From: Blastocystis sp. Blastoise
Lineage: Eukaryota > Protista > Bigyra: Opalinata
Assembly (NCBI GenBank): GCA_039096225.1
Contig: JBBPEB010000012.1
Span: 143,071 to 207,070, forward strand
Direction of reading: 5' to 3'
Length of the DNA stretch: 64,000 nt
This document shows, piece by piece, positions 3,818-26,842 of this stretch (position 1 is its first letter; each line of letters starts with the position of its first letter). The notes below the pieces were generated by a model. That model saw only the letters and a list, made by a program, of their open reading frames with translations. It ran no database searches and was not told the DNA's origin. The position numbers and the translations under genes were made by a program.

Positions 3818-5389
3818 TTATGCTCTTCCCCATACTTCATAGTCATCCACAATAAATGAATTTGAACTATTTGCATTTCCAGTATTTACAAATAATGATG
3901 ACTTTTGAAGTGTATTTACTTCATTATAATAATATGCATGACAAGTAGATGATGAATTTTGATGGCATCCATCAGATATATTAATATCACCAACAAATAC
4001 TGGTCCATAAGAAGGATCACAATTGATAGCATAATCTTTATTATGAATAGTATATTGAGTAGGAGGAATACCATGTTCATTACTTAAAGTAAATATAAAC
4101 TCTTTAGAATATTGTTTATATGTCTCCATGTCACTACACATAGTGAAAGGAAATGATTCCCAACTTTGATCTGTATATCCTCCAAATATATTTATATGAT
4201 TATTATGACCTATATGTTTTATTAGAGTCACTGTTTCTCCTTGATTATCACAATAGTTATGAAATTCGTAAGCAGAATAATTATGCTCACTTGCTCTATA
4301 TATAATAGTTTATAAATTAAACAATTATTATAAATAATATATATAATAATGATACCTAAATAATAATTTCCATTTTTTGTCTTTTCCCAGCCAGTTCATT
4401 AAGGATCTTTTTAATTTTCTATTAATTATAGTAGATTCATCAAATATTCCTTTAATAATGCAGTCTTTCGCTTCATCTCTTCCTTGATCACCAAATAATT
4501 CAATCATTTCTTTCTCAAATGAATCTTGCTTAATATTACTAATTTTATCTTCTTCTATATCTATAATTTTATTCTTTACATATTCATTAATATATTCAAT
4601 ATATTCATATTCCTTATTCATATATAAACTATCATCTATATGATTATAATCAGCAAATCCATGATCATAATTCATTATATAATTCTTCCATAATCCATTC
4701 TGTACTAAATAATCTTTTATAATCTTATCTTTATTTCCATTAATAATCAATTCTATTTCTTCTTCTTTTTCTATTTTCTTCTTCTTTGTTTCTCTACGTT
4801 CACGTGCAAAGACTAAATCTCCAGGAATAATTATATTGCAATATTCAAATAAATCTAAGATTTCTAATTGGTCTTCGTATATAAAATTATAAAAATTAAT
4901 TGGCTTTTCATTCAAATAATCTAATAAATAATAAGCAGAAGCTTCATTTCCTATATAATCTAGATATATATTACCATAAATATCTCTTGATTCTTCTGAA
5001 GACGCTTCATATATATATGAGTAAGGAATTGATTGAATAATACTCTTTGATATTTGAAATAAAGAACCACTATTTGTGAAACGAATAAAATCTTCATCAT
5101 TATTCTTGTTTCTATAATGATTACCATTTTTAGTAACACTATTTCGACTAATTTCATCAAAAATATTTGACGAAATCGAAGATTCATTGATTTGATCATC
5201 ACTTTTTGTTTCATAATAATTACGAGAAATGTTCAGAATGCTCTTAATCAACGTATCGGAATGAATATAAAGTTTTGATATTGACGAACAACAATCAACA
5301 AAAGAATGCAATAGTTTTCCACGTATAACTATGTCTTCTTCTAGTTGCCTGAGACAATCTGTATTTATATTTATTTGTTCTATCAACAT
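3818..5389 (-). CDS. BTB-like + TLDc domain protein, 2 exons
   Basis: ORF 4328-5389 ends WLGKDKKWKLLFR and splices (GT ~4355, AG ~4296) into RASEHNYSAYEFHNYCDNQGETVTLIK...IFGGYT...FIFTL...GPVF...VDDYEVWGRA*, the canonical TLDc motifs. An N-terminal segment (NSGSLFQISKSII...IYLDY) is BTB/POZ-like. Confidence 0.88.
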
Positions 5390-5403
5390 TTTACGTGAAT
5401 ATT

Positions 5404-6050
5404 CACTATCAGGTCATTTTTAATTTTTAAAGCTTTTTGATTGGCTAATTTTCGTTCAAAACTTATTCAGCCAATAAAATTATAACAAAAAAAAGACTTA
5501 GGCAAAAAAAAACAAAATTTTCATAAAAATTTTAAGTCGACTTTTGATTTAGACACAAAAACCCTATTAAACATATTTTATTAAAGAATTGACAATATTT
5601 TTTATTTACAGAGGATCACACGATATCCAAACCGTTTTTATTTATTTTAAAGTCGCAATTCTGAAGAAAATGAGGGTCAATATTTTAAAATATTTTATAG
5701 TTGTGTTTAAAGTGAAGACCCTCTCAGAGTCACATATATGATTAAAAATGAATAAAAAGACCTCTATGGTTCGAAACCAAAATTCAGCCAAAAAGTCAAA
5801 AAATTATATTTTTTTTACACTGAAAAATTGAGCCGAGCCTATTTGTTCCATGGGCAGTCAGACCAGAGTTTTGAATTTTTAAAATATTTACGGGAATATT
5901 TTTCTCGTTCAAAACTGAGTCTATTTATATTTTATTGACTATCAGAGGATATAAGTGTTTTAGAAGAGTTTTTTCATTTGATTTTATTATGACTTAAAGT
6001 TCCGCATACAAAGAGTATGCCAAAACTTCTAAAAAAACTACTTTTCCTCA
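5404..6050 (+). repeat. CACTA long subterminal arm, diverged inverted homolog of ~25720-26384
   Basis: Shared blocks in inverted orientation include GACTTAGGCAAAA, AAACCGTTTTT, TTTTAAAGTC, GAAGAAAATG.GGGTCAAT.TTTTAAAATATTTTAT, AAAATTCAGCCAAAAA, CGAGCCTATTT, AGTCAGACCAGA.TTTTGAATT and TATTTACGGGAATATTTTT. Confidence 0.85.
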
Positions 6051-6411
6051 GAATCAAATAAAAGTCTTTTATAAAGTCACTTTTAGAGTTAATTATGTAA
6101 CATGCAATCGTTTTAAGTCAAAATTAATAGTTTTTAGACGAGTCAGTCAACAGATCAGAGAGTCAACAAAAATGAGTAATTTTTTAAAACTTGAAAGTAG
6201 TGAGATACAATAGTGTTGTGTCAATAGCTCAGTACATAACGTTTAAAACTTGTAATTTTAGTAGTGAGTCATAAAAAATTAAAAAAAAATATAAAAGCTA
6301 TTTTTACGAAAATTTTTAGTATTTGACTAACAAATTTTATTATATTAGTGAATTCATCTTTATTTTTAAATTATTATAACCAAACATATATAGATATTTT
6401 TATACTTATTT

Positions 6412-6870
6412 ATGGTGTTTTTTATACAGGTATGCACTTTATAAGTATTTATTTATTAGATATTTTCTACTTTTTTTCATAATTCTTTTTAGTTTTCCAT
6501 TGTGTAAATCCTTTTCCTGACAGATATTCTCCCAGGTCGGTTTCAAAGTGGTTCATCATGTGTACTTGTTGGGTTTTTTCTTATAAGGTATTTTATTACA
6601 TTTGTTTATTTTTAATTTTTTTAGGTTGTTTATTAGGTCTTGTCGGTACTTCAAATAATCAATTAACAAAGTCTAGAAGGTATATAATTATATATTTTTT
6701 TTTTCTTTGCATTTAGATATTTTTCTTTTTTCTCTTTTCCTATGTTACAATATTCTTTTATTCTTTTTTTAATTTACTCTATTTTTAGTATATGTTTATT
6801 ATATATTATATTATATAGGAAGGTGCTTTTTAGTTGCCATTGGTGAATTAGGTTGCTGGTGTGTTCTTTA
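6412..6870 (+). pseudogene. Degenerate short Gly-rich exons (same style as 11370-11812)
   Basis: Short exons are bounded by TTTAG/TATAG and AG|GTA, e.g. 6625-6679 (G)CLLGLVGTSNNQ...CTAGAAG|GTA and from 6819 ...IGELG. No continuous frame. Confidence 0.4.
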
Positions 6871-6935
6871 AAAATTAAAAAGACTGATTTTACAAAGGAT
6901 ATTGGTCTCTATATGTCTATTCATGTTAATGATAA

Positions 6936-6976
<41 letters not shown>

Positions 6977-7578
6977 AATATCTTTAGAATCACGGGAATA
7001 GTGCTTGATTTCTTTGAAGAGAGAGGTATATATAAGAATATATACAGAGTTTATTAAGATGGATATACACAAGCAGATATTTATGGATTAGAAGATATTC
7101 AAGTTGATATAGTAGAGCCATTTCCTTACCTGGAGCGTCATCTAGATGCGTCACTTGTACTAACCAATACATCTCATGATAAGAATTTACTTATTTATTA
7201 TCATCAGGACAAACAGATTTATACCATAATAGATCTTTCTTACTCCCCCATTTCTGATAAATATACATATTCACTACGAAATAGTGATAATAGAGCATTT
7301 ATTTTTGATTTATCTCAAGGTTCATATACGATTCTAAAAGAAATTCCAGCACGTGATCGTCTCGTGACTCCCCTCAATCCCCCTCCAACAGACCCCATTC
7401 TCAGTACGAAACTCAAATCATTTGTCGAGGAATATACAGATAAACGATATTATTGTAAACCCTATAGTTTTTTATATAAAGCTATTGAAACCTCTTTATA
7501 TGAATATATGAATGTATTACAATCATTATGGGCAGATATCGACTTTGGAAAAGATGTATATATATATATATATATATG

Positions 7579-7613
<35 letters not shown>

Positions 7614-8534
7614 GTTTGAATACTTATTCTCTATGTATAAATTAAGCATATATATTTATATACTTACTTCTCTTCCTTCACTTGTTACTATTTGTAATGA
7701 AATGTATATATATATAGTTTATAAAAATTTTTACCAAGTGATTTTCCCCGCCAAATTGATGTTGATGAATATACAAATACACTGAAATTTGCTGAAAAAC
7801 GAAAAATGTAATTATGATTTATTATATTATTAATATATATATATATATATATATAGTTATCAAGATCCTTATGATTATCAAAAATTATATATTAATATAT
7901 ATATATATAAGTTGATGAGATCAAACATGAAAAATAAAATTGATGTATATAATTATTATTATTATATATATATTTATATATAGGGAATAACGAATTTAAC
8001 TACATTATTTAATGATCTTCAAACGGTAAAGAAATCTGCTATTTATAAATCACTTGTTCAATATATACGAGACAGAGTATATATAACTATCTATATATAT
8101 TACTTATATATATGTTACTTATTATATATAGGATATATTAGATGTGTTATTCCGACAGTGTTTAAATACAGAAACGTTACGATTGTCTCTCTCTCTTCTT
8201 CAATATATATGCACTGTTATCCCTGTATTTACTTATTATTCTATTCTTATTATTATATATATACATATTCTTATTCTTATATATATAGTTAACAAATAAG
8301 GATATTGATATATTTTATGAAGCTGTTCATAATAGCAGTATATATGAATACATTCAAGCAACTACCATTATATGTCAACTACTCCCTTTCTTCCCTAATC
8401 AACGTATATATATATATAGTATTATGCTTTTTATTATTATATATTCTTATATATAGAACGTGAATATTTACAAAGTTTATTATTAAATACAAGTGTTGAT
8501 ATATGTACAGTACAAGTATATATTTATATATACT

Positions 8535-8565
<31 letters not shown>

Positions 8566-8849
8566 AATTATACATATATATATATACTTATATTCATATT
8601 ATTTATAGAGTATTAAAGTATTAAGTAAAATTGTTAGTTATATATATAAATGACATCCCTGAATCACAACCTATTCCTGATTCTATTCGAAATTCTATTG
8701 TATATATTATGTATTATAATAACATTCTTATTATTATTATAGAAAACAGTTGGTGAGTATATTTTCCGTTAAGGATGTATTTGTACTCCCGAATCAAATG
8801 AAGAAAAGCACGTGATATTCTCATTGATTCCACTTTATAAATCGGAGAG

Positions 8850-8903
<54 letters not shown>

Positions 8904-10560
8904 ATATATATATATTTTATTATTATTATATATTATTATTGTATATTATTATAGACTTCTTAACAACATGGTTAAAGAATGCAATATATTTATATAAGTG
9001 TTTTAAATTATTCTTCAGTTTATTATGCTTTTAAACCTTCCTTTGAAATCCATTTCAATTCATATACTGTACTATCTCGTTTCTTACTTATAATATTATA
9101 TCATATTATTATATATAATACAAAGAAGAGAAACAATATTAGTAAGTCTATATATATATGAATTGAATTATATTCCTCAAGATATGATATATACCTTATT
9201 AACAAGAATAGAAGAAATTATACAAATAGCTCGTTGTCCTTCTTCTTATATACCTCCTCAGTTACATACATTAAAAAGATTGATATTTATTCTATTTCCT
9301 TTTTTATGAGTCATAATAGTTTAAAAGAAGTCTATAGTCCTCCTTTTCCTCCTCCTCCTACTACTAATTATTTCACAGGTGCATATAAAGATACAGGAAA
9401 TGATTTGATGATTGATAATGATATGGAAGTACCTGAAGAAGAAGAAATAGGATTAATGAATACATATGAAGAGAAAGAAAGAGGAGAAGGAGAAGAAAAA
9501 CCTAGTGGAGAACTGATTTATGGATTAAGTCATATACTGAATACGGTTGAAATTGAAGGTGAAGAAGAAACAGGAAAGAAAAAAGAAAAAGAAATGATAG
9601 ATATGTTTACTTATATAGGAAAAAGAGAAGAAGATAATGATCATTGTATCTTTTGTATTTATTATGGTTTTATTATAGTTACATTATATTTATTGTATAT
9701 ATTATTGTGTGTATTATTATTATTATTATATTATATAATATATATAGCTATTGATGTTCAATATGTATATTCTCTTCGTAACCGACTGAAAACCGCGGAT
9801 AAGAAGATATATATGATATAAATATACTGGATGACTTTGTATATATATATATATATATATATTATTATTGTTATTATTATTATTATTATTATATAGAATA
9901 TATGTATTCTATGAATGTTTGAATCCCTCTATCAGCTACTTATGTCACATGATTTTCTTATTACATATTTTATAGGATATACTTAATTATCCCCGGTTAT
10001 ATACTGTTATCCTGTTATCTCCTACTTCATCTTCCCTACTAAGAGTAGCGTGTTGTCTTTATGAATTATAATCGTGGGAAATACTTATTCTAGAATTTCT
10101 CAAGTATATATATATATATACTTTATTGTTCTCGTGATATTATATATTTATATATATACTTTATTATTATATTTTGATATAATATATATATATATATATA
10201 TAGTTATTACAATTCCATACAAACTACAGAAAAAGGATCATTATCTATTTGAAGAATTACCACCATATAAAACATATATATACAACTATATACCTCCTAT
10301 AATACCCACGTTTTATGTTCCTTATTGATAACCATGATTATCAGAAACATGGTTATTATATATCTTGTATATATATATATATATATTATATACTTATTGT
10401 TATTACTATTATTATATTATTATTATTATATAAACTTTTGGATGATTCCTTTATGTATTAAGATAATGATAACTCTTGTATATATATATATTTATAATAC
10501 TATATCAATATATATATATATTTAAATTATATATGGTTTTATAATCATGTATATATAGAA
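6870..10560 (+). pseudogene. Captured multi-exon fragment of a USP9X/USP24/USP34-like deubiquitinase N-terminal helical (ARM-like) region, with in-frame stops and frameshifts
   Basis: Manual splicing of GT...AG exons gives YKLMRSNMKNKIDGITNLTTLFND...LVQYIRDRDILDVLFRQCLNTETLRLSLSLLQYICTVIPLTNKDIDIFYEA...ICQLLPFFPNQ.REYLQSLL. By eye this parallels my recollection of USP9X ...[21 protein letters not shown]...LTLQDLDNIWAA...LAWDFSPEQLDHLF. There are in-frame TAAs (~7055, ~8770) and no USP Cys-box is visible. Confidence 0.55.
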
Positions 10561-11369
10561 TAGAAAGGAGTTTAATAAATTATTCATATTATATATATTA
10601 TAATGATATATTACTATATATATACTATATATTATCTTTTTTATCTATCTTTTATTTTGTTTTATTTCTTTATATATTACTCTATTTGTTTTGTTGATAT
10701 TTAGGAATAAAATTATTTATAGAATTCTTTTGGAATAATAGAAAAAAGAGTAAATATTAATCTACTTTATACTTTAATAAATTACATTCTTTATTATGTC
10801 TTAAACAACTCACAAAGCTTTCAAACATTCTCGTTTTATTTATACATCTACAATAATCGATAAATTGTTGAAATAAATCATATTAGAAACAAAAGTTTAT
10901 AAATTTTGAATCATGTCTCTATAAGTGATTATACTAAATATTTCTCTTGATTATCTAGGACCTTCTTGTTATAAATAAAATACTATTATATAAAAATAGC
11001 AGACAAATATATTTAATTGTAATTAAAGATTTTTTAAATAACTATATTTTTGTTCTAATAAGTCTTAAACATGTTGTAATTAAATAATTTAGGTTCATAA
11101 ACACATATTACATTTATAAATCATTTTTATATTCAAATAGACTTTTTATTAGAGAAAAAGGGAAAATTTAAAAATGTTGTAACCCCTGGAAACCCAGATT
11201 TTGTAAAGAATTTTATTATACAAAAGAAAAATTGTAAGGGGGAATTTCTCTTTGTTTATAAGATTCAACTTTTTCGCATATTTATATTTATTTTTCTTTA
11301 ATTTACAACTATATTTTATATATTATTAAATGTATATATTATTTTTTTTATTTATCTTATTCTATATAG

Positions 11370-11812
11370 GCTTACTGGTGTGTCAAAATAGATTCTAATA
11401 GGTCCTAATTGGTCTTCTTTTTTAAAGGTATGCTTATTTTTCATTTCTTTTATTCTCTTTAGTTAGTTTATGAGTTTCCGGGCCTGAACGTATAGAAATC
11501 TGGTTGTATTAAAGGTATATATTTTTTAGCATTCTCTCTGCTATTATTATTTATTATCTTATATAGGTTCAACTATTGTCTCAGGTCTCCTTGGTCAACA
11601 AATCAATGCTTCTGAAGGTATTTAATTATATTTTATTTTTTTGAAATTAACTAATTTAATTTTTTATAGGTTCTAGGTACTCTCTGGTGTCCCTTTTGGT
11701 CTACACTGCTAGGATTTAGAAGGTATATTGTTATAATATATTTATTTTTTTACATTCTATTTTTATAGTTTTGGTTCTTGTTCAAGAGTTGGTCTAGAAG
11801 TGATGTTAGAAG
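11370..11812 (+). other. Array of five ~44-58-nt exons, each ending AAG|GTA; degenerate, possibly a Gly-X-Y repeat remnant or spliced ncRNA
   Basis: Exons lie at about 11370-11427, 11463-11514, 11567-11617, 11670-11722 and 11769-11812, separated by ~35-52-nt GT..AG introns. The first two have stops in all frames. The third is open: (G)STIVSGLLGQQINASE(G). Confidence 0.55.
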
Positions 11813-12105
11813 GTATGTATTCTATATTATCTATATTATTATTAGTTCTATCAATTTATATATATAGTCCTCAGATACAGTTGCCAATTTATCAAAACAA
11901 ATCAAAATAATTATTATTTTCTTATCTTTCTTGCTATTTTAATTATTATATATTATTTATTGTCTTTTGTTATATATATATATTGATTATCATTCACACA
12001 ACGATTAAATTAATAATAAAATGACGTTTCTAAAAGAATTCTGAACGAATGAAAAGAAAGACCATATTCGACAAAAATAACCTAGTTTTTGGCTACTCTT
12101 TTCGC

Positions 12106-13178
12106 GAGAAGTTGATTAGGGTCGTCCATTTTATCTATTTTGCCGTTAGGGGTTGTCCGCGGACAACCTGCGTCACGCACGATTTTCTTGTTCATCCAAT
12201 TATTCTCTTATTTTTCATACTATTTTTCAAAATAAATATTTAGGGGTTGTCCACAATATTATTTTATTATTTTATGTTATTTTCAATACTATGGCATTTA
12301 TTCTATTAATTCAGGATATATATTTTGTAAGAGTAATATATTCTTTGAGCAGAATGCAAAAATAATAAGACTAACCGTCAATGACCAACAAATTACGGCA
12401 TTGCCATTCAATTAAATAAAAGATAAAAGTCTATTTTATATGCTCAACCATTTATTAACTTATCTAAGTTTAAAATGATGTGTATTACTCTAAATATGTT
12501 ATAAAAAACAATAAAACAGAAAACAATTATTTTTTAAATTATTTTCTTTTTATACCTGTAATAACATAATATAAAATCAAACAAAAATCATTTTTAAAGT
12601 CAGTTAGGGCAAGTGATATAGTCATAGCAAACATATTTGTATAATAGGTGAGAATCCTATAAATCACAATTATCTTATTATAAATATTTAGTTAATGATA
12701 ATCACTTTCAAAAATATTTTGTAACTACTATTGCAATTGAATTATGCTTAAAACGAATTGTAATACCGCATTATGAATAAAATTCTTAATTAGACTTATA
12801 AATACCTTTAAGATATTCTTAATCGTGACAAGAGAATAGTTGTGTATTGTTAAACGAATTCTAACGGAAAAATCATTATTGTATTTACAGAATTGTGTTC
12901 ATTTGTGCAATGTATGCTGATTTCGATGCCTACACATTATTTAAGAAGTTCTTCTAAGCTATGTCTATCCTGAATTAATAGAATAAATGCCATAGTATTG
13001 AAAATAACATAAAATAATAAAATAATATTGTGGACAACCCCTAAATATTTATTTTGAAAAATAGTATGAAAAATAAGAGAATAATTGGATGAACAAGAAA
13101 ATCGTGCGTGACGCAGGTTGTCCGCGGACAACCCCTAACGGCAAAATAGATAAAATGGACGACCCTAATCAACTTCTC
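12106..13178. mobile_element. Non-autonomous Mutator-like element (MULE/MITE-like), 1073 bp, nested in CACTA element 1
   Basis: It has 213-bp apparently perfect TIRs (12106-12318 and 12966-13178) beginning GAGAAG. They are flanked by a 9-bp direct repeat TCTTTTCGC (12097-12105 and 13179-13187). Long TIRs plus a 9-bp TSD are characteristic of the Mutator superfamily. Confidence 0.88.
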
Positions 13179-13528
13179 TCTTTTCGCCTGACTGAAAATA
13201 GTCTTAAAAAGTAATTTAGTCATTTTTTGGCAAAACTCTCCAAAAAGTATCACGGGAATACCTGATAGTGATTGTAGATAATGTAGCAACTAAAAATTTG
13301 AAAATTTTTTAGAAAAGACTTTTTTTTTCACAGTAGGTGTCCCAAGTCACTATGAGGCATTCCCGTAAATATTATTTGCAGATCAACGCCAATTGTTGTA
13401 GAATTTTTTTTAAGATCAATTCAGACAAATTATTGGAATAAGAAATTTCTTTTGTTGTTAAAATTTGATTGGTGAAAACAAACAAATAAGGAAATAATAA
13501 ACATTTTTTTTCAATAAAACAATAAAAC

Positions 13529-13660
13529 AAGCCAATAATCTATTAATTAAAAAGAAAATAAGCCAATAATCAAATAAATAAAACAAGCCAATAGTCTATT
13601 CAATAAAACAAGTTAATAAGCCAATAATGTATTCATAAAAATAAAAAATAAGCCAATAAA
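13529..13660 (+). repeat. Subterminal repeats AAGCCAATA (x5) of CACTA element 2
   Basis: Copies lie at ~13529, 13560, 13585, 13618 and 13650. Related motifs (GATTGGCT, CAGCCAATA) occur near the element-1 end at 5439-5477. Confidence 0.7.
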
Positions 13661-13702
13661 AATAATAAAAATAATAGAAAAAGAAAATAAAATTTGGCCC
13701 AA

Positions 13703-14389
13703 TTATATTATTGACTTGTGTTTAATGTATGTGAATGGAAACCAAACACAACACTGCTGAAGCTTCAAAATCAGTTCATTATTCTTTTTGAATATTCTTT
13801 CATTTTTGTCTGGAAACGGAATCCTTTCAATCCATTCGCATGTAAATTGATAATTACTATTATTATTCACATTCTCAATCCATGTATTAAGAGGCTCAGA
13901 GATCTCAAAGCCAAAAAACTGGATTATTCTTCTTTTCTGTTTCCGATTTACTAGTGACTCTCTCACACATCTCATCACCTCTATCTTACTAACCATGACT
14001 TTATTATCATATTTCTTGAAATAAAGATAAATAATATTACAAATGTATAGATATAAAGGACTTTTTGTATCGACAACAGTGTTCTTTGCTTTTGTACAGA
14101 ATATGCTTCTAGCAAGTAGTCTAATTTCAGTGTTCAAACAAAAAGGAATCAACATAAATAGATTCTTCACTTTATACGACCACATCAATCCTTTTCTAAT
14201 AGCAACACCATTCATAATGGATACTTTACGAAGAAATTTCTCAACATATGTTGGAATAGTACATTCAGCTTTATCTAAAGGACATTTTTCTTCTATATCA
14301 TCAAAATATGCATTAACATAGTCAATCATTCTCGATCTTACATTAGTAACCAATTGTTTTCGTTTCTTGATAACTATCTTAGATTCCAT
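13703..14389 (-). CDS. Hypothetical 228-aa basic protein inside the CACTA element, divergent from the transposase (candidate accessory/TnpA-like factor)
   Basis: Uninterrupted 228-aa ORF with normal globular composition. It may have an upstream exon (TATATTAG acceptor just before the ATG). No family recognised with certainty. Confidence 0.6.
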   Translation of the reverse strand: MESKIVIKKRKQLVTNVRSRMIDYVNAYFDDIEEKCPLDKAECTIPTYVEKFLRKVSIMNGVAIRKGLMWSYKVKNLFMLIPFCLNTEIRLLARSIFCTKAKNTVVDTKSPLYLYICNIIYLYFKKYDNKVMVSKIEVMRCVRESLVNRKQKRRIIQFFGFEISEPLNTWIENVNNNSNYQFTCEWIERIPFPDKNERIFKKNNELILKLQQCCVWFPFTYIKHKSII

Positions 14390-14601
14390 TTAAGCTTCTA
14401 ATATATAAATATAAGATAATAATGTTTATTAATTATAATAAAAGATAAATATTTACAAATAATAATTGGAGGGAAATATTGTGGGAAAAAAGTACTAAAA
14501 CCAAAAAAATCATGATAAATACCTTGAATAAAAATATATTTGTTTCAAATGATAATTGGAGGGAAAAAACGCGGCATTAGAAGATGTATAAAAGAATAGC
14601 A

Positions 14602-17600
14602 ATGAGTAATAATGACTTGTATTTTTATAAGTCGAATGGAATCAAATCAACACTGAATCGTATTCTTAATCAACTATCTAATTGTTTAATACCATATACA
14701 CAAGACTAAACTACTATTATATATAGCAGATGATATTTTCAATTTTGACAATTTTGATTTTAAATCAAATTGCTGAAACTCCTGTTGATAATATTCAAGA
14801 AAATGACATAATGAATTCTTTGGTAAACTCATTTCTAAGTTCAACTGTATATATATAGTTAAAAATATATTATTATGTAAACTTTACTTAGAAATAATCG
14901 GATATAATTATTTTAATGAAATTCATTGATCTATTTATTTATATTATATATACACCTATATAGAAAAAAAAAGAAAAAGTAAAAACACTTACTGAAGATA
15001 TTGAAGAAGATATATTTGCTTGCTGGATTTTGCTTGGTATTAGTGAAGCTAAGATTATTTATCTATATACTTTAGCAAATAAAATAATTAAAAAGCTTAG
15101 AGATGACATTACTGCATTACCTATTCCACATAATGGACAAGATATTTTGAGAAAACGAACCAATAAATCTAATACAAAACTTATATATAGAAACATTTAC
15201 ACATGCAGTATATGTTACAACATAAACACGTTTAATAATGGAAGAAAGAATCCACTTCTATCAAACATTCAGTGTAGTAATCCTACATGTAATAAAAATA
15301 TTTGTATATATATACTATATATATAATATATACTATATATACTATTATAAAGAATTAAATATATATTTTATATATTAGTATTATATAAAAGTTATTATAT
15401 CTATATTTTTATATACATAATTATATATTTGTAAAATTTTGAATATTTTATAACTACTATCATCTATAGATAAAATATATTATTGATTATTAATATACAT
15501 AGGTGATAAGCAGGTAATCATACCATTAATTCCAAGAATAAAAGCACTTCTTGTTTCTTCACTGTTAACCAGGGATCTAACATATTATACTAAAGAGCAA
15601 ATAAAAGATGCTTTCAATAATAAAACCTATAAAGATTCTACAGGGTATAACTTACCTATTCCTCAATATATGTATGGATCAACCTATAAGCGACTAGTTA
15701 CTAATGTAATTAATAAGGGGGATATCTTCTTATTCTTTCAAGTTACGACAGATGGTATATCAGTATTCAACAAAGCAGTAGCAGCACAAAACAAATCAGC
15801 AAATCCAATTCTTGTGAGATTATTAAACTGTGTTGAAGAGAAACGTATAGAATCGTGCTTAAGTATACTGATAAACGAATTCTTAGTATTAGGTGATGGC
15901 ATAGATATGCCAGTTTTTGTAGGTGATACAGTTCAAACAAAGAGAGTGGTTGGAATACTTCTTGATGTTTTTGGTGATACTTTAGCAATCTCTCATGTGG
16001 GACATTTTCTAGGTCCAACTTCGACATTTCCATGTAGATTCTGTAATATGTCCAGTGATAGACATATAGATAATTTTCATCAAGGAATCAAGTGTTCATG
16101 TATTTATTCCTTCTATTCCTATTTCAGATACTTCCATTCTAAACCAATCATATAATAACTTTGATGAATCATTAATTCTTTATGAATCTATCCAAAGAGA
16201 CGAACATCATTTTGATGATGCATTTAATGCTAACATATATCATGAATTCACAAAAGATAAAATAAATGAAATAAGAATAAATAACTTACCGGAAATAACA
16301 TCAATAAATGGTATTAAATGTGATAAGAGTATTTTCGAAAAATTAAATTATTTTGATCCATCATGTAGCTTCCCAATAGACATAATGCATCTTTTTGGTA
16401 ACATTACAACATTAATTCTATCATTGATATTTGGATATAATAAAGCCTCCTATATAAAAAAATTAAAGAATAGTAATATGGATGAAAAGAAAGCAGCAGA
16501 AATTATTTCCTCATTTTCACTTGAACCATACAACCTGGACATCTTAGCTACAAGGTTGATATGGATAAACAGCTTCTATGGAAAATGTGAGTACCAATAC
16601 AGATATATTCTTGACGAAACTTCATTTCATAAACTTACCACACATACAAAAGTAATGTTTATTTCTAAGATATTACCTCTTATATTATATGATTTTACTT
16701 CCAACGACAGCACCTTAATACCACTTATAGAACTCTTTGCTAGTATAGTCCATGATTCTAATACTATTTCTGCTTTCTCTGTGATTTTTGTTTACCCAAA
16801 GAACTTATAAATTCTCAACTACATATGATTTGTCACATTCCACATTGCATAATATCTTCTGGATCGATGAAAGCTGTTTCAACATGGTCTTCTGAGTCTT
16901 ATTATTCTAAGTTGAAGAGAAGAACGTATAGTAGAAATGAGTTTAATATATCTACTTGCATAAACTGGATATATCAGGAATCTATTATGTTATCTACAGT
17001 AGAAGCAAAAAATATTAATGAGCCTATAGATACACAAATAGCCAGAGCAAACAATGATAGAGATATAAATATAAATAAATTTTTATATAAAAAATGTATA
17101 TACCACGAAGATCATAACACCAATCCTTCAGTATTTAGTGCTCAAGGAAGAGATGTAATAGAAGGAATAGAATTAAATGATGAAGATATAAAGAATTTGT
17201 TAGTTACAATATTAACGCATGGATCCAATAAAATTGTAGCCTTACTACTAGAAGAAAATCTTTTCAATACAAAATCAAAGAACCAAATTATACAGCTATT
17301 GAATAATCCTAATACACTAAATACCTATAAAAATAGATTAAATCAATTACATATAAATTACTATACAAAAATACTTGTTAATAATGAAATTATATTTGAT
17401 AGATCTGATATAAATTCAGGGGTGAATAGAATAGATAATTCTTACATTATATCGTACACATCAACTGGGATACCTCATCTATATAAGGCTTTACTATATG
17501 TTCAGGTTGAAGAAGAATTTTATATTCTTATGTGTGATTATGGCCCAGCAAAACCATCAAAGACTGGGCTGTACTTTATTATTCAAGGAACATCGTTTGA

Positions 17601-17874
17601 GAAGGTATTTAAAAAAATAACACTAGTTCTTCCTTCCAATATCATAGTGGCCGACGTCCATGTAGATAATTCTTGTGATGAATCTAATAGCAATAAGGTA
17701 ATAAATAAATATTATAAATTAATCTAAATATTTAAATATATACAGAAAAAACCAAAAAGAAAACGTCGTATCTCAGAAGAGGGACTGTTTGTACCATCCA
17801 GCAGTGTTATCACGTATACTGTGTTCACGCCTTCGGAGACAATGAAGAATCACGGTTATTCACCTGTACAATAA
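14602..17874 (+). CDS. CACTA/EnSpm DDE transposase (TnpD-like), multi-exon, with frameshifts (pseudogene or assembly indels)
   Basis: Motifs appear in the canonical order: N-terminal CxxC...C...C; VTTDGISVF; SANPILVRLLN; LINEFLVLGDG; DVFGDTLAISHVGHFLGPTSTFPCRFC; FPIDIMHLFGN; LHMICHIPHCIISSGSMKAVSTWSSESYYSKLKR (DUF4218-like, catalytic E). The last exon has an NLS-like KKPKRKRR. Frameshifts occur at ~14760 and ~16790, and ~16100 is either a frameshift or a 28-nt intron. Confidence 0.88.
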
Positions 17875-18780
17875 AATTCATAACATAAATATATACAATA
17901 TGTAAAAATATATACCTGTGTTTTATTATAATTCTTGTTTGAACCTCTTCTTGTAAGCCTTTACGGTCACCCGGTATTCTTCTGATTAAGATTTGTGTTG
18001 TTTCTAGAACAGATCAGTTGATCTTTATTCAAGTATCTAAAAAACATATATATATTTGACATAACACTGTAAAAATACATACACAAATTTATGAATTGAC
18101 TTGAATAACATTCTAGTTTGTATTTTTTGTTTTGTTGAAAATATGATTATTCAGTTCTTTTCTAAAATTCTATTTTAAAAAAAGAAAAAGATATTTTCAC
18201 GAATTTAAGGAATTCTTAGGTAAAATATTTGTTTAATCACGATTATGTTTAAAACGTTTGACAAAAATAGAGCATGGAAACATTGCACATTTCATTTTTA
18301 GTAGTTTATATAATCAAGTTATACAATGAAATATACGTCTTTATTTAGTGATTGATAGTCTCAAGTGGTGTTGAGCAGCCTCATATATATATCAAAATTA
18401 TTTAGAAGCTTTCTTGTATTGAAGAATACATTTAATCACTTTTCTATTCCTTTATGTGTCTTTATTCCTATATTAAATGGTCCTCGTATATATATATAGT
18501 CTGTCTTTGCGTTTTATTTGACAAGTCATTTTATTATCCTATATATTTGTCTTAAAATTATTTCACTGTTATAGTTTTTGCTTGTTTTCTTTCAATGAGT
18601 TTATTTATATTACTTTCAAGTGACAATCTTAGTATTTGAAATAATGCTTTAGTAAAAGTGTCAATTGTCGAAGAATGGATTATCTTCTGTTAATATTGGG
18701 TAAATTTCTATGTAGTTTAACTTGCCTCTTACACAACTAGTCATAAATAGGTTATAATGATATGCTTGTATATATAGTTC
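17760..18780 (-). pseudogene. Degenerate spliced gene convergent with, and overlapping, the transposase 3' end
   Basis: Minus-strand splice signals: TTTTTAG| at ~18037, CACAG|GTATA at ~17916 and TGTACAG|GTG at ~17864. A partial frame reads ETTQILIRRIPGDRKGLQEEVQTRIIIKH. Stops are present. Confidence 0.35.
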
Positions 18781-19220
18781 ATCATGTTATAATTTATTGT
18801 GTTTATATTTTGTATATTTTATTTATGTTGTTTTACATGTTCATGTTTTAAGTCGTTTTTCTAATATTAATATTTATTTTTTCAGCTTCTTTTTGTTAGA
18901 GTATTGATAGTTTTTCATTAGAACTTATACAAAGTACTTGCTAATAAACTCAGTTTAATCTAGCAAAAATAATAATGTAGTTTTAAAAATTGCTGTTGTT
19001 TTTTAAAAATAGAATTACATACATATTTAAAAACAAAAATAAAATAAAAACTTTTAAAATGCAATAACAAAATATAATATATGTATACATAAGTAATAAA
19101 TTTGTTAATAAATGAATATTGTCTAAATATTAATATATAAGCTAAGTTATTATTTATGATGTTACACATACTAATATAAGCTTAGATTTTATTATTTACT
19201 TATATAATAATTATATATAA

Positions 19221-19225
<5 letters not shown>

Positions 19226-19282
<57 letters not shown>

Positions 19283-19313
19283 TATATATATATATATATG
19301 TAAATATATATAT
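19226..19313. repeat. (TA)n microsatellite
   Basis: A long, slightly interrupted TA dinucleotide run is directly visible. Confidence 0.9.
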
Positions 19314-19649
19314 ATGTTGCTACTTAGATCTACATTAATTAAGAATTTGTGGTTTTATTCATTTGTAATTATACAATAAAACTAGAATAATTTGTTTTAG
19401 AATTCATATAATTGAAATTTTGAGAAACTTTTTGAGACCTTATAAGAATTGACTATATATTTCTATATATAGCATATATAATAAAATTAATAGGATTTAC
19501 TTTTTTCATTTTAAAATACACCAAATACATAATTCCTTTTGAATGTAGAATGGTATTTCATTCTTTTTATCTTTATATTTTATAAAATATTTAATAATAT
19601 GATAATAATAAGCCAATTACTTATTATAGAAGACTGAAACACTATTTTT

Positions 19650-22600
19650 TGATGATGATTAAATTGATTAGTTATTAAATAACTATTCTGGATATATATT
19701 GTTTTATGTGTTTTGATTTCAGAATATTTCATTAGAGTCGAATCACAAGGATTAATTTTTAAAATAAGCTGAATAATCGAAGTATATGAAATATTAAATG
19801 AATAGAAATAGATGATAGAAGCTGAATATACATGATATATAATAGAAATAAGATTCTTTTAAAAATAAGAATCAGGATTATTACTTGAATTAGAGCAACA
19901 ATAAATTATTCAAAGAATATATGTTCAAATGATACCTTTTATTAAAAGAGTGGGAAAAAAATAGTTTAAAAATACTATTTCAAATCAAAAATAAAAGGAG
20001 AATAAAAAGTTCATATTAGACGTAGTAAGAAAGGAGTTGATAATTTGAATAATGGAAAACATAAAAAGATAAAGCATTTGAAGTTGAATACCATGATTAA
20101 TTAATTAATAAAAATCTGTATTAAAATAGTTAAAGAAGAATTACAGCTAATAGAAGATAAATTAAAGAAGTTAATCGGAGTTTAAATTGAAATAATAATA
20201 ATAAAATAATGGTACTGCCAGCGTAGAAATGTAAATTAATATTTAAGAAATAGAATAAGAATATTCAGTAGTGAACAGAAGTAAAAAGAGCTAAATACAA
20301 TTAGATAAAAAAAGATATTTAAATTAGAAAAAGAAGAAAGAATTTGTGGATATAAATATATAAATATGAATAAAGAATAAGTAGAGGAGTAGAATCAGAA
20401 ATCAAATAACAGAAAAGAAAACTGGAATAAAGACTATGATTAGATTCAGTAGTTCATTATTTATATGCTAAATCGTAGAAGAATGAAAATAATAATATTT
20501 TTTGATACAAAAAGCTAAAATAAGAAGAGAATATTTGTGAATATAAAAGAATGCTAAAAAAATGTTTTTGACACATAATAGTTTAATAGCAATGAAAAAA
20601 AAATAGAACTAAATATATAGTTATATAATAGATACAGAAACAGGAGTACTAAAAGACAGAGTGGAATGATATGATATCATATAAAAAATTGAGGAACAAG
20701 AAGAATAAAAGAAAAAGAACATTAAAAAAAAGATGCTTTAAAACTATTAAGGTTAAAAAGAGCTAATGTAAACTAGAATGACAATTTTAATTATATGAAA
20801 ATAAAGAAGAATACTAGTATTAGAAAGAATTGCATAAACAAGATGTTAGAATTAAAGATATAGTACAGTATGCAAATAGAAAAAGAAAAAATAATAGTAT
20901 ATCAGTTTAGCATGAATATAGAAAGGAGAAAGAGTAAAAACATTATAAGTCTTTTACATTGTAAACAGAATTAGTCTGACTAAAATTAGTTTTTAGAAGA
21001 CTAATACAAATAAAAATAGTAGAAACACCCATGAAAACCTTAATATAAAAAAATAGATATATATTTGTAGAAAGAGTAGAATAATAAGAATAGTAGTTTT
21101 AATGAGAGAAAGACGAGAATGAATTACAATAGTAGAAAGAGTATGAATCTTATTACTAAGATTGACAAGAATATAGACATTAAAAAGTAGGAAGAAGAGT
21201 AATTTAGGATGAATAATATAATTAGAGATGATAATGTATTATTCATATTAAAAAAACTCCATAAGAATATATTATAAAATTAATTTCCTATAAAAGTATT
21301 AATAACAATAGGAAAATATGGAAAATAGAAAGACTAGCAGATAGTTATAAAGTGTAATGAAATTAACAGAGAGTAATAGAGAGTAGAAGATTTATATGAT
21401 AGTTATAACTAGTAGAAGAAAAGCTAAACAGAATAATTATAAGAAAGGTAGTTAGAGGATAATACAATGAAAACTATGAGAAGGAGTAAGAAGAGTAGAA
21501 AAAATAGAAAGGCTGAAATAATTGAGAGAGCAAAAGGAAAGAGGAAGAATAGTAACGAGAAAAAGAATGAATATAAAGTAAGAAGATTAGGAAGATTAAT
21601 GCCATTATAAGAAGTTGTAAGAATAGACATATAACTAATAGTTGATAAACTAGGAATATTATAAAGACTAAGAGTAACAAAAGTATAAGTAATAGAATTA
21701 ATAGGAATTTTTTGTTTTTTAGTAGAAGTAGTGGTTGAATGTGGAATATGAAGAATACGTATAATTAGTAGCACATCTAGGTAGTATGTCTAGAAAACAT
21801 AAAATACATAAAATACATGGAGTACAATAATATATATATTATATATATTATATAATACATAATATATATAATATAAAATGTATATATTATTTATTATATA
21901 ATATAAAACAATTAGTAGTATATAGAATGTATAATAGTATGAAGAATAGATATAATATGTATATATAAGAAATAAAGAGAAAATGCTACATTATGTAGAA
22001 TAAGTAATAGACAAACAATAGAATAGAAGAAGAAAGTGAAAAGATGATAATAGAAGACTAGAGAGAATCAGTAAAAAAAAAGACTAGCTAGAATTAGTTA
22101 TTGAGTGTAGAAAAACTACTTCTAGTTATAGAAACTATAGAAACTAGAATCTGTTGATAAGTACAATTATTAAATAAATACATTTGATATAATATGAAAA
22201 ATCGTTAGAATAGCTATAATAGGCCGAAAAAGAAGAATATCAAGTTCAAGTTTATTATTTATAAATAGAAAGATCAAGCATAATAAACATAATAAAAATT
22301 ATAGGAATGTTAGGAGATTGGAGAACATGTTGTAAAAATACAGCATACTTATTATATTTAATAAAAAAGACTAAGTGAAAAAGGAACTATAATAGTATAA
22401 GAAAGCAAAAATAATATTCAGAATCAACAGAACATGAGAATATATCTTATTACATAGAATACATATTATTTACAGAATACATAAAAATATATGTAAAGTG
22501 TAGTATAAATATAATGAGAGAATAATAAGTATTCTAGTGTTATGAGCATAATTAGCAATATTTTGTACAAATAGAATTATTAACATTGTAAAAAGTACGG

Positions 22601-24750
22601 TTATTATTATAAAGAATATGTATTAAGGTGGAATATAGAAAATAAATAGAATCGATGATGATAGACAGAATATGTAGAATAGATAGAATAATTGTTATAT
22701 ACATAATATTCAAAATCAGCTGAATAAGAACAGTAGATATGATATGTACTATTTGGTAGAACTGATAAAATAAAGAGCAGTAAGCAGAATAAAAAAAATA
22801 GAAGTATAGGTAGAATAAGATGAATAAGAATGGATAGAATAAAAATTAGCATGAAAAGAGTTTGAATAGAAAGAAATCGAACTATAGAAGAATAATAAAT
22901 AGTAGAGAGAATTTGACATAAGTTGAATAATCAAATTTATAAGTATAAGAAAAATAAGTAATGTTAAAGAGTATAAGTTAATAGTTGATTTTATGAGTAG
23001 ATTTGTAAAATAGACAAAATACTTGTGGAATATGTAGTAGTAATATAGAGTAAGTATATGAGAAAGAATAAAGAGAATTAATAGAATAAGTAATGAAATG
23101 AATAGATAGAATAACTAAAATGGGTAGTATTTGGTGATATAAATAAGAATAGGTAGAAAGAGTAAAATAGTTCAAAGTATTGGATAGTTAAATGGTTAGA
23201 ATACGTATAGAAGTTGAATAATTAGAAAATGGTACATTAATTAACATTGAAGAATATAATATATAGATAAAATGTTGTATCTTTGAATTAGTAAAATATA
23301 TAGTAATTTGATGAAAAAATAAATAGTATTATAAGTAGAATACGTAAAAAAAGTAGTAGTTCTAATTTCTCTAGAATAAATTATTTTATAGATATAACAG
23401 ATTTGATAGAATCATATTAAATGTATAAATAGGAGAAAAAACATTATTAGAAGAATAGGCAGAATACATACAATATGTAGAAAGAATATAGTAGATTTTA
23501 ATAGCTTTAATAGATAGAATCGATGGTATAGATTGAATAAGTGGAATATAATAAAAAAAAAATATGATAAATACATACAATAAAAACAGTAAAGAGTAAT
23601 AAGTAGAATGAATATAATAGGAATAATAAGTAGCAATACGTAGAAAGAGCAAAAAGGTAAAACAAATAATAACAGTTAAATAGATGGTATTTCTAATTAG
23701 AGGTAAAACACCAATAGATAAGTAGAACATATAACATATATAAAATATATAAAAACAATAGAATAGAGAAATAAATGGAAACAGTAGAAATAAATAGATT
23801 GAATAAAGAATAAAATAATAGAATATAAAATGTGTAGAATGCGCCAATAAGTAGAAAAGGATAATAGTTTTTAGGAGTAGCTATAGGTAAAATGTGTATA
23901 ATTCTAAGATTGTATCGGAATAAAATGAAATAAAAATGTAATCAATATAATGGATAATTTTGGTTAATAGATAAAATAAGTACTATTCAGTAGAATAGGT
24001 ATTACAAGAAGTATAGACAAAAATTAGTAGCTGTTATAAAGAAAAAAAAAAGATTTATAAGAAGAGAAGGTAGAATATGCAGATAATATAGAATTTATAG
24101 AATTTTGTAGATTATGTAGATAGTTATTATAGGTATTATAAACATAATAGATAGACTAATTTTTATAAGAAGAATAGATTTAAAATTTGTTGAAACCAGA
24201 ATAATTTGTAGTAAGTAAATAGATAGAACAAGTATTATAAGAAGAATATGTTGAATATCTAGAAAATACAGAATACATACAACGATAAAAGAAAATGAAT
24301 AATAATTGTTAGTCATACCAAGTGGAATAAGAAGAACAAAAGTAAATATTATCAGAAATAGAAATTAATAGAGAGGATTTAGAAGAGCAGTTACCATTGT
24401 AATAAGAATAGTACTAATAATTTAAGCAGTAAGAATGATACTATGAATAATTATAATAAAAGACATAAAAATAACATTAATTCTAAAAAGTAAGGTAAAG
24501 ATAAAATATGGGAAAAGAAGCCTAGTAATATAGGAAGAGAATCAACATTAAAAATGTTTTACTTAGAATAGAAGTAGTATAATAAAACGGATAACACTAA
24601 TAGGAATAATACTATGAAAAAAGATAAGAATATATGAGGAAGAATATTTCTGATACAAAACAGAAATAAAAGCAGTTTTACCATCTATATTGGGCTTAAC
24701 AATAATATGAGAAACCTAAATTAAAAGTATAGTAAATAAACATGATAACA
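19650..24750 (-). pseudogene. Heavily decayed captured gene, possibly a leucine-rich-repeat surface protein
   Basis: Minus-strand fragments read LYNIPSLSTIS, INLPNLLTLYS, RTFYNVNN, LINVPFSN and LSNLLYL. A minus-strand GT..AG intron lies at ~21988-21791. The plus strand is extremely C-poor and AG-rich. Boundaries are approximate. Confidence 0.4.
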
Positions 24751-25719
24751 AAGAATAATAAAATCATAATAATAAATATGTATATACATTTTAAATAATA
24801 GTTTTATATATATCGAAACATAAGTAAACAATTATTTTATATATCAGCAAATGAATTAATAGATCAATAAGTATCCATGAAAATGAATGAATCTTTCACA
24901 CGAAATTTTTTACCTATATTTAAAAAAATTATTGAATTAATAAAAATATAAAAAAATGAAATAAGAGATAAATATCAATTAGATAATAATATATACGTAA
25001 TAATAAAACATGATTAAGAATATAAATATAAAATATATAAACAGAATCAATTGATTCACTAAGGAATAATATATATATAAATACAACTTATATGAGTATT
25101 AAATAGTGTTTAAAGAAAGACGTGAAGAATAATAAACACAATATGAATAAAAAAGAAGATGTAAATATAAGAATATACCTTATAACAATATTTTGAGATT
25201 ATGCTTCAATTACAAGTTTCTGAACCTATTTGATATTCAAAACAGACGAATTTGAATCTAAATATAAATAAATCAAAATTACGATACAGATGAGTATAAC
25301 TAACAAGAAAAACATTGAGATAATTGATTAAGAATATAAATAATAAATGCAATGATCACACTAGATCTTTGTAATAGTGAGAAGCTGTTCACATAAAAAG
25401 CTTTTAAAACTGATGACTTTGGATGGATTATTTTTAAAACTCTTATAAATAAAATAAAATTTCCGTGAATTAAAAGTCATAAATTCTTCCTTTGTTTTAA
25501 AGTATAAATATTGATACTATAAACATTTAACAAGTCACAGCATACACTACTAAAGCTATTTTATTGTATCCAAACATTTTAAAGGTGGAATATGAAAATA
25601 GAATCATTTTGTCGAAATCACTAATTACTAGGCAGACTCATTTGTAAATATTTATTTGAAATAAGAACAGACCCTATTTGTATAAAAGGCATAAAATATG
25701 TCTATATTACGTGTTTTCT

Positions 25720-26384
25720 TTGAAAATGGAAAAGTAATTCTCAAATTTTAAACCCCTATAAAACTTTCCATTAAAACTGTTAGTTGACCATTCGCAACAA
25801 GTCATAAAATAAGTGTAGACTCTTTATAAGCCTCAATAAGCTGTCAAATATAAATAGACTCATTTTATAGTTAAAAAAATATTCCCGTAAATACTTACAG
25901 AATTCAAAAATCTGGTCTGACTCTCCGACAGACAAAATAGGCTCGTCTATTTTTTTCACTGTAAAAAAATAAAAAAATATATTTTTTTGGCTGAATTTTG
26001 ATATTGACCATTAGAGGTCATATAAATTATTTTTATTGATGTTTATGACTATTAAACAACATTTTCTTCAAACATAACGATAAAATATTTTAAAACATTG
26101 ACCCCCATTTTCTTCAAAATTGTGACTTTAAAATTTAAAAAAACGGTTTTGATGTCGTATGACCTTCTAAGACAAGAAAATAATGTCAATTTTATTATAT
26201 AATGTGTCTTATATAGTTTTTAGAGTCTTATAAAAATTTTACTGAAAAAAAGTGTCCAAATTTTGTTAAAATTCACGATTTTTGCCTAAGTCGCTGAAGT
26301 CAGTCTCTTTTCATTGGTGGAACAAGCTTTGAACCAAAATCAACCAATTATATGAATTTAAAAATAAAAAAGTGCCTCATAGTG
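25720..26384 (-). repeat. CACTA long subterminal arm of element 2 (inverted homolog of 5404-6050)
   Basis: Shares the blocks listed for 5404-6050. Confidence 0.85.
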
Positions 26385-26842
26385 AGTGTTTTTAAAAAAA
26401 TATTTTATCAAAAGAAAGTCAAATAATTATATGAAATTCGTTAAATAACTGTATTAATGTTCATTTTTTGTGGTTTTTATAATTATTAGAGTATAAATAA
26501 TATTCATTTATAGAAGCTTTATAGACATGCTATACATATATAAAACGAATAAAATATATAAAGTATATATATATCCTCATAAAAAATATAAAATCAATAT
26601 TGACCTAAATTATTTAATATATAGATATAGAATATATTCATTTTATCCTTTTACATCTAAGGATTCTAGATAAAATCAATTATGAATCACAGTAGCTATA
26701 AATATCTTATACACAATATATATATATATAACAATAAAAAAAAAACATAAAACAAACAAACAAAAAATAATACACATAAAATAACAACTATAGCTTTTCA
26801 TACTGAATAGATCACTTTGTTTACAATTATTAACCAAGTGAT

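Follow-up and report, generated by a model that had tools for sequence, protein, structure and literature searches.

Two neighbouring transposable elements in the genome of the tortoise gut protist Blastocystis sp. Blastoise, here called E1 and E2, belong to one large, recently active CACTA/EnSpm system that probably carries captured host-gene DNA and in which introns have probably been lost via repair from spliced RNA or cDNA. Membership of the CACTA system is shown by the ends, the 3-bp TSDs, the logic of empty sites and ~40 long open transposase frames elsewhere in the genome, many of them accompanied by a back-to-back second open reading frame (ORF2). The most unusual feature of these elements, as they stand in the assembly, is the precise, copy-specific loss of introns. 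E1 and E2 lie in the window, i.e. the whole stretch of 64,000 nucleotides that was analysed (Table 1). The main text of the genome paper does not mention CACTA and leaves this active transposon system undescribed. The initial annotation, made from the window alone, had rightly recognized both the pair, with its intact TIRs and TSDs, and a Blastocystis-like host; it had overlooked the transposase and ORF2 of E2 as well as the intron loss.

Table 1. Position of the features of E1 and E2 in the window
Feature	Position	Strand	Remarks
E1 left TSD (ATT)	5401..5403	.	14 bp upstream of start codon, minus-strand TLDc-domain gene
E1, non-autonomous CACTA element, subfamily A	5404..13270	+	11-bp TIR, TSD
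E1 left arm	5404..6870	+	common to all subfamilies; initial 540 bp share homology with E2 outer arm
E1 cargo, intron-rich piece of host-type gene	6870..10430	+	arm-less match at G000:C14:183.9-190.2 kb
Fused exon in E1	7061..7555	+	introns at 7111, 7216 and 7303 precisely absent, present in siblings
E1 right body	10430..12105	+	70-82% identity to other subfamilies, some adjoining a transposase
Nested Mutator-type MITE, 1,073 bp	12106..13178	.	213-bp perfect TIRs, 9-bp TSD (12097-12105, 13179-13187)
E1-E2 spacer, 77 bp	13271..13347	.	ATT (E1 right TSD), host promoter DNA, AGT (E2 left TSD)
E2, decayed autonomous CACTA element, single-copy	13348..26384	- (opposite to E1)	12-bp TIR, TSD
ORF2, 228 aa, intact	13703..14389	-	back to back with transposase
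Upstream transposase exon of E2, cysteine cluster	14964..15323	+	36% identity to same exon in intact elements
E2 transposase main exon, three frames	15487..17724	+	breaks near 16080-16100 and 16765-16775
Purine-rich block, ~5 kb, single copy	19900..24700	.	50% A, 16% G, 5.6% C
E2 outer arm	25846..26384	-	73% identity to left arm of E1
E2 right TSD (AGT)	26385..26387	.	

A genome-wide CACTA/EnSpm family

Both elements end in CACTA..TAGTG termini within short perfect TIRs, of 11 bp in E1 (7,867 bp, or 6,794 bp (~6.8 kb) minus the nested MITE; flanks ATT/ATT) and of 12 bp in E2 (13,037 bp; flanks AGT/AGT). Other copies of the termini with TSDs, for which the initial annotation proposed a search, do exist: the genome contains the terminus pattern 109 times, as against 44 times for a reversed control, and an exact 3-bp TSD flanks 16 of 17 paired elements (chance about 1e-22), namely 13 elements read singly, two 13-kb elements, E1 and E2. 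A terminus pair on C17 (743228-755254) was discarded as a chance pairing because a host ORF passes through the element end.

The transposase motifs D-D-E, C(2)C and H(3)H, as defined for CACTA/EnSpm in PMC12730594, are invariant across 12 family members and are present in the pieces of E2. Transposase_21 exceeded the Pfam cut-off in one family member (28.8 vs 28.6) and came close to it in another, DUF4218 gave below-cut-off matches in 8 of the 12 family transposases, and neither domain was matched in Pfam by E2's own transposase pieces. A model of the family transposase (pLDDT 69) had RAG1 as its best Foldseek match (E 5e-7), followed by Transib, and a predicted RNase H-like core of RAG1/Transib type is thus supported. 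The transposase is very divergent: 23 matches were obtained among 1.84 billion representatives, the ten that were checked all coming from this organism, and no relatives were found in metagenome contigs. The family resembles known CACTA/EnSpm (CMC/CMCT) elements (PMC4158355, PMC12730594, PMC8978399) in its CACTA..TAGTG ends, its 3-bp TSD and a DDE transposase that bears C(2)C, H(3-4)H, Transposase_21 and DUF4218, and it has a conserved second ORF that may correspond to their TnpA/ORF2. Unlike theirs, however, this ORF2 is short, matches no Transposase_24 and is placed back to back with the transposase.

Independent insertion of E1 and E2 into one promoter

The inner ends of E1 and E2 are alignable over ~80 bp, and the outer arms, inverted relative to each other, can be aligned at 73% identity. 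The homology perceived in the initial annotation is thus real at both ends, although that of the outer arms extends over 529-543 bp and not over ~650 bp. Homologous ends only 77 bp apart, where ~0.03 such pairs would be expected by chance, could bring to mind one composite head-to-head mobile unit, a reading to which we attach almost no probability. It is largely refuted by the TSDs, as the outer flanks are ATT and AGT and each element has its own duplication; besides, E2 is single-copy, far older than E1 and absent beside the E1 siblings that were read. The several further close element pairs in the genome, moreover, are mostly in direct orientation. E1 and E2 are confirmed to be independent insertions into the promoter of one TLDc gene, since their TSDs differ. 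The head-to-head arrangement noted at the outset therefore holds as far as the opposite orientations are concerned and is a local clustering of separate insertions. That both elements reached this promoter may be due to local hopping or to a common preference for open, tolerant sites.

Host-gene DNA probably captured by E1 and its relatives

The evidence supports E1 as a recently multiplied non-autonomous Pack-CACTA, mobile together with its cargo. At least nine dispersed copies contain both arm and cargo, and those read carry different perfect TSDs. Four siblings (L001, L002, L003 and L005) are 95-99.6% identical to E1 across the whole length, and L001 shows the empty site of the nested MITE, which has two further copies (three in total) at 98-100% identity. 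No transposase match was obtained within E1 or its siblings; E1 would be mobilized by a transposase provided in trans. Its left arm contains small GT..AG-bounded exons, and a micro-exon array lies inside the right body at 11370-11880.

Sister subfamilies retain the left arm and the right body and hold different host-gene pieces in the slot between them. The intron-rich middle of E1, when compared among copies, is common to the whole subfamily (~25 copies) and is not copy-specific; the cargo-defined subfamilies comprise 9-18 copies. Because the slot pieces bear introns, capture was from DNA. The E1 cargo is 85-88% identical over most of its length to C14:183.9-190.2 kb, where coordinate searches scoring only the best ~40 candidates revealed neither a family-A arm nor a right-body match; this locus is the probable donor gene. 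The donor evidence is clearer for the middle of L004, which has PA14 and Ig domains at the Pfam cut-off and is clearly a host surface-protein piece. Its one other genomic match (C26:738.9-740.9 kb, 83-85%) likewise showed no arms or ends among the best ~40 candidates of such searches. The initial view of a gene-capturing, Pack-CACTA-like family is thus borne out by the different intron-bearing, host-like middles between common flanks and by the arm-less probable donors; it does not extend to E2, which is mainly a decayed autonomous element.

Alternatively, the middle of E1 may be a TnpA-like accessory gene encoded by the element itself, with divergence from one subfamily to the next. It is kept in ~25 copies, its exons are long and open in subfamily A, it matches no known host family, and its pN/pS of ~0.5 relative to L011 fits a weakly constrained element gene as well as a recent pseudogene. 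This explanation nevertheless seems improbable to us, given that the middles of sister subfamilies have no protein similarity to that of E1, that one of them is the surface-protein piece, that the accessory role is already filled by the separate conserved ORF2, that stops occur inside the matches in subfamily A2 and that the copy at C14 is arm-less. Captured host DNA, the reading we prefer, could have been acquired either by template switching during the repair of transposase-made breaks or by the fusion of two neighbouring copies. With regard to the cargo protein, the exons searched singly had no Pfam match and a PDB search with six exons was likewise negative. A USP9X-like identity was abandoned on these grounds; near 10075 there is only a putative, decayed Cys-box-like resemblance. 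An F-box reading of the subfamily C cargo was likewise dropped, as it found no Pfam support and no donor emerged.

Pack-CACTA and other Pack-TYPE elements are known from Arabidopsis, rice and maize (PMC6379663, PMC8903248), and we found no literature report of Pack-CACTA in a protist. The elements described here resemble those of plants in being non-autonomous, with conserved ends and genic DNA captured internally, and in their close-spaced, mostly direct insertions. They differ in that the host is a stramenopile gut protist, to which Pack-type gene capture by CACTA elements is hereby extended, that the cargo is 3-4 kb long and contains introns, that the flanks are common to transposase-bearing relatives, two of which (13 kb) carry host-like spliced DNA, and that copies, in the assembly, lose introns individually. 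Animal Pack-TIRs are also TIR transposons with duplicated host DNA, for which template-switch models of capture have been put forward and which include multicopy cases distant from the parent gene (PMC8277862). Most of them, however, are single-copy and near the parent gene, whereas here cargo defines whole subfamilies of 9-18 copies.

Probable precise intron loss among near-identical copies

In the assembly, the 99.6%-identical siblings of E1 differ mostly by exact removals of GT..AG introns. Sixteen intron positions account for ~29 absences in six copies, five of which are <0.5% diverged. These exact indels measure 35-102 bp with 0-3 bp of microhomology, for a random expectation of 0.26% per deletion. 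Besides the three introns missing from its fused exon, E1 lacks a fourth at 6881. The removals are all on one strand, are spread over arm, cargo and right body, and often affect runs of neighbouring introns; subfamily C shows the same pattern, as do two autonomous copies of 13 kb. Near-identical copies also exchange DNA tracts. L005 is identical to the diverged L011 over 7216-7555, two retained introns included, and both copies lack introns 7808 and 8077 and keep 7945. As the absences are incompatible with one tree, they call for recurrent loss or conversion, and exact removal among near-identical siblings is indicative of repair templated by spliced RNA or cDNA.

The differences might instead be gains (introner-like insertions) or DNA-only microhomology deletions, to which (TA)n-rich, fragile introns could be prone. 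This is very improbable: the introns are mutually unrelated, occupy the same sites in diverged copies and have no TSD, the microhomology amounts to 0-3 bp, and genuine slippage deletions within the same introns are imprecise. An assembly artefact is another alternative, which we consider unlikely. In that case, the elements and the capture would be real, and spliced RNA reads used in short-read polishing would have deleted introns randomly among copies. With RNA reads, too, splice boundaries would be exact and neighbouring introns would be missing in runs; the final polishing step is called only 'short-read' in the genome paper, whose results text cites DNA and RNA together. Yet the methods of that paper specify nanopore reads and Illumina DNA for the majority of the polishing steps, some removals measure 93 and 102 bp and others are triple, around exons of 60-90 bp, the lost-kept-lost pattern is seen both in L005 and in L011 (10% diverged) beside a shared DNA-level tract, and the probable donor at C14, judged by block lengths, retains the introns in question. 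Removals of such size, and triple ones, are hard for unspliced short-read mappers, and reads of 99.6%-identical copies map ambiguously.

Under repair from a spliced template, transcription and splicing of the element would run from the left arm through the cargo. Short tracts would be rewritten during break repair, with the spliced transcript or a cDNA copy of it as the template. Introns would then disappear patchily, because only short tracts are rewritten, and the absences would spread among copies by conversion. More tentatively, and with some doubt on our part, the spliced transcripts of cut-and-paste transposons may here routinely serve to rewrite the elements themselves in a break-and-repair cycle, the introns of captured pieces being stripped copy by copy at ~1 intron difference per 3 point substitutions. 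If true, this would constitute a hybrid DNA/RNA pathway that yields processed and shuffled gene fragments and needs no retrotransposition.

Precise intron loss in plant CACTA transposases has been ascribed to spliced RNA/cDNA and reverse transcriptase (PMC4158355). That loss, however, was deduced for the transposase gene by comparing the consensus sequences of families across deep time, whereas here it separates copies <0.5% diverged and concerns cargo and non-coding parts. The mechanism of intron loss is a long-standing question that has been examined almost solely through deep comparisons. Should raw DNA reads confirm the absences, intron loss would have been caught in the act between near-identical copies, and ~29 cases at 16 introns in a culturable organism would make the RNA-template model directly testable.

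E2, a decayed autonomous element

E2 is mainly an autonomous element that is now broken, its DDE transposase being frameshifted and accompanied by ORF2. It thus falls outside Pack-CACTA, defined by having no transposase of its own. The transposase residues are found at 15751 (D), 15976 (D), 16033 (C(2)C), 16822 (H(3)H) and 16894 (E). At the DNA level, only the ends and the ORF2 region of E2 have matches elsewhere, and E2 may be an older self-encoding copy that has since decayed. Relatives of ORF2 occupy the same position in ~20 other transposase-bearing elements; Atlas and Pfam searches with ORF2 were blank, and a BEN-like or other fold was set aside, the single-sequence model (pLDDT 38) being unusable. 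The purine-rich block is probably decayed cargo, for which no donor was found; an alternative genetic code or hidden frame was rejected after neither periodicity nor a frame appeared on either strand. ARAGORN and Rfam detected no tRNA-like element in E1 or E2, and a non-canonical mimic would escape both. No subterminal repeat array was seen at the inner end of E1. Near the inner end of E2, AGCCAAT is present five times, and GAGTC is scattered in both outer arms.

Termini, transposase and family of E1 and E2

The initial annotation had recognised two CACTA transposons, E1 and E2, and its coordinates and terminal motifs for them were correct, each element having a matching target site duplication. 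The elements, in opposite orientation, are separated by 77 bp; their inner ends can be aligned across ~80 bp, and their outer arms are indeed homologous in inverted orientation, albeit over ~540 bp (73% identity) rather than the proposed ~650 bp. Across the 33.3-Mb assembly, 109 instances of the terminus pattern were counted as compared with 44 for a reversed control, and exact 3-bp duplications flank 16 of the 17 paired elements read (chance probability ~1e-22). The main text of the genome paper on the tortoise isolate Rus-B (PMC12129017) does not mention CACTA elements.

Positions of the two elements and associated features
Feature	Position	Strand	Characteristics
TLDc-domain gene	3818–5389	minus	promoter hit by both insertions
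E1	5404–13270	plus	ATT on both sides; perfect 11-bp terminal repeat
Nested Mutator-type MITE in E1	12106–13178		1,073 bp; 213-bp repeats, 9-bp duplication; one sibling has the empty site; three copies
E2	13348–26384	minus	AGT on both sides; perfect 12-bp terminal repeat
E2 ORF2	13703–14389		intact, 228 aa; back to back with transposase
E2 upstream transposase exon	14964–15323		aligns with intact 820–890-aa open frames
E2 transposase	15487–17724		three overlapping frames; aligns with intact 820–890-aa open frames

Both elements had been read as cargo-loaded, gene-capturing transposons. E1 is a cargo-bearing non-autonomous copy of 6,794 bp without its nested MITE; E2 is mainly an autonomous element in decay and carries transposase frames. 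The two frameshifts of E2 could in part be sequencing errors. Transposase frames of at least 750 aa are found at ~40 loci of the genome. Of two Pfam domains of plant CACTA transposases (PMC8978399), Transposase_21 exceeded its cut-off in one family member and DUF4218 was weakly matched by 8 of 12; the structure predicted for the transposase is nearest to RAG1 and Transib. A search of 1.84 billion representatives returned 23 matches, and the ten looked up, the most distant included, all belong to this organism. Relatives of ORF2 are kept at the same position in ~20 other elements, and it is therefore an element gene; it probably encodes the ORF2 helper. Everything else in E2 occurs once in the genome, and this single-copy part contains a 5-kb purine-rich block (19900–24700) in which no clear reading frame was found. 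The plus strand of this block contains 5.6% C and 16% G, with 208 TAG versus 40 CAG, for which strand-biased C loss and decayed purine-rich cargo are candidate readings.

E1 would be mobilised in trans. A second, more divergent, Transposase_21-positive transposase clade (C19:220.5, C23:205.6 and C5:500.5 kb) lies 7–20 kb from 81–82% matches to the E1 right body and is a candidate mobiliser of its subfamily. Nine transposase copies (on C3, C4 (three), C8, C13, C14 and C34 (two)) score identically, have frames of 889 aa and arms ~10 kb downstream, and represent a very young autonomous family. At another CACTA locus, L020, two tyrosine-recombinase-like ORFs (L020:3209–4398; C15 ~648.2–649.4 kb) lie ~2.5 kb inside the element end; their Phage_integrase matches (E 4e-4 and 0.012) are below the Pfam cut-off, and they are possibly a nested Crypton-type element. 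At the protein level, the DNA beside them matches the 2.7-kb insert in locus L013 over short stretches.

Cargo and its probable donors

The E1 arm is present at 89–100% identity in nine copies, and the E1 middle also occurs in 16 more distant ones. The assembly reveals a slot architecture: other subfamilies retain the flanks (1.45 kb on the left, 1.7–2.3 kb on the right) around middles that are unrelated at both DNA and protein level. In L004, a copy of a sister subfamily, PA14 and Ig domains, typical of surface proteins in this host, reach the Pfam cut-off in the middle. The 1.9 kb coding for these domains match the genome at exactly one other place (C26:738.9–740.9 kb, 83–85%), beside which no element part was scored among the best candidates of the genome searches. 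Similarly, C14:183.9–190.2 kb matches only the E1 middle, mostly at 85–88%, is stop-free in the exon tested, and is not among the best-candidate matches of the arm and right-body searches. On this sequence comparison, the C14 and C26 loci are probable donors for E1 and L004, respectively. Since the E1 cargo still bears introns, its probable capture was from DNA, possibly via template switching or fusion of neighbours. Searched one exon at a time, its protein gave no match. In the middle of another subfamily, L007:3400–3852 weakly matches alanyl-tRNA synthetase (Pfam E 0.001) and is probably cargo as well. Pack-TYPE elements have been described from plants (PMC8903248) and Pack-TIRs from animals (PMC8277862); a literature search, thin on subscription journals, found no report of Pack-type capture in a protist.

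Precise intron differences between siblings

E1 differs from four siblings by just 22–30 substitutions per ~6.4 kb. In the assembly, almost all large indels among these copies are exact GT..AG introns of 35–102 bp with 0–3 bp of microhomology, an appearance expected of 0.26% of random deletions. By our tally, 16 intron positions vary, with ~29 absences in six copies; E1 and sibling L002 are 10 introns and 30 substitutions apart. E1 lacks the introns at 6881, 7111, 7216 and 7303, hence its long 'exon' 7061–7555. The lost introns lie on one strand throughout, are spread over arm, cargo and right body, and frequently form runs. Exact intron differences also occur in subfamily C and in two 13-kb autonomous copies. 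Judged by block lengths, the C14 locus retains the variable introns, indicating loss rather than gain. The non-cargo parts of E1 contain arrays of 45–60-bp micro-exons with clean GT..AG introns (6410–6900 and 11370–11880), conserved across subfamilies without a clear reading frame; introns are precisely lost there too.

The copies have exchanged DNA tracts and are mosaics at the DNA level: sibling L005 is identical to the 10%-diverged L011 over 7216–7555, a tract with two retained introns, and both copies have the intron at 7945 but not those at 7808 and 8077. This shared lost-kept-lost pattern argues against the main rival explanation, an assembly artefact from polishing with RNA reads, as do the length and multiplicity of the removals. 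The assembly was made with nanopore reads and Illumina DNA according to its methods, but one polishing step is described there only as 'short-read'. We consider such an artefact unlikely. We favour intron loss in which a spliced transcript would extend from the left arm across the cargo and, itself or as cDNA, template short-tract repair, and conversion would afterwards spread the intron-less tracts. For plant CACTA transposases, intron loss mediated by reverse transcriptase has been proposed on deep time scales (PMC4158355); the literature searched contained no such report for near-identical copies of a DNA transposon.

Insertion site and clustering

Both elements lie in the TLDc gene promoter, 14 and ~88 bp upstream of the start codon. 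As each has its own duplication and their outer flanks are unlike, they did not arrive as a unit. A gap below 100 bp would be expected ~0.03 times genome-wide, assuming 100 random elements. Genome-match coordinates reveal at least five further pairs whose members lie within ~1.2 kb of each other, most of them directly oriented, as well as a copy located in the transposase gene of another; clustering is therefore a habit of the family, as it is of Arabidopsis Pack-CACTA, in which close direct pairs are the proposed capture substrate (PMC6379663). By analogy, the inverted E1/E2 pair would be a less likely substrate. Two more CACTA elements (L020:6934 and 7582) lie 647 bp apart in the direct orientation proposed to seed gene capture.

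Further along the window (39538–63488), three giant minus-strand ORFs of 3,091, 2,537 and 1,241 aa look like Ig-repeat surface proteins, the longest having alternating 999/1,002-bp repeats that form 2,001-bp units 96–100% identical.
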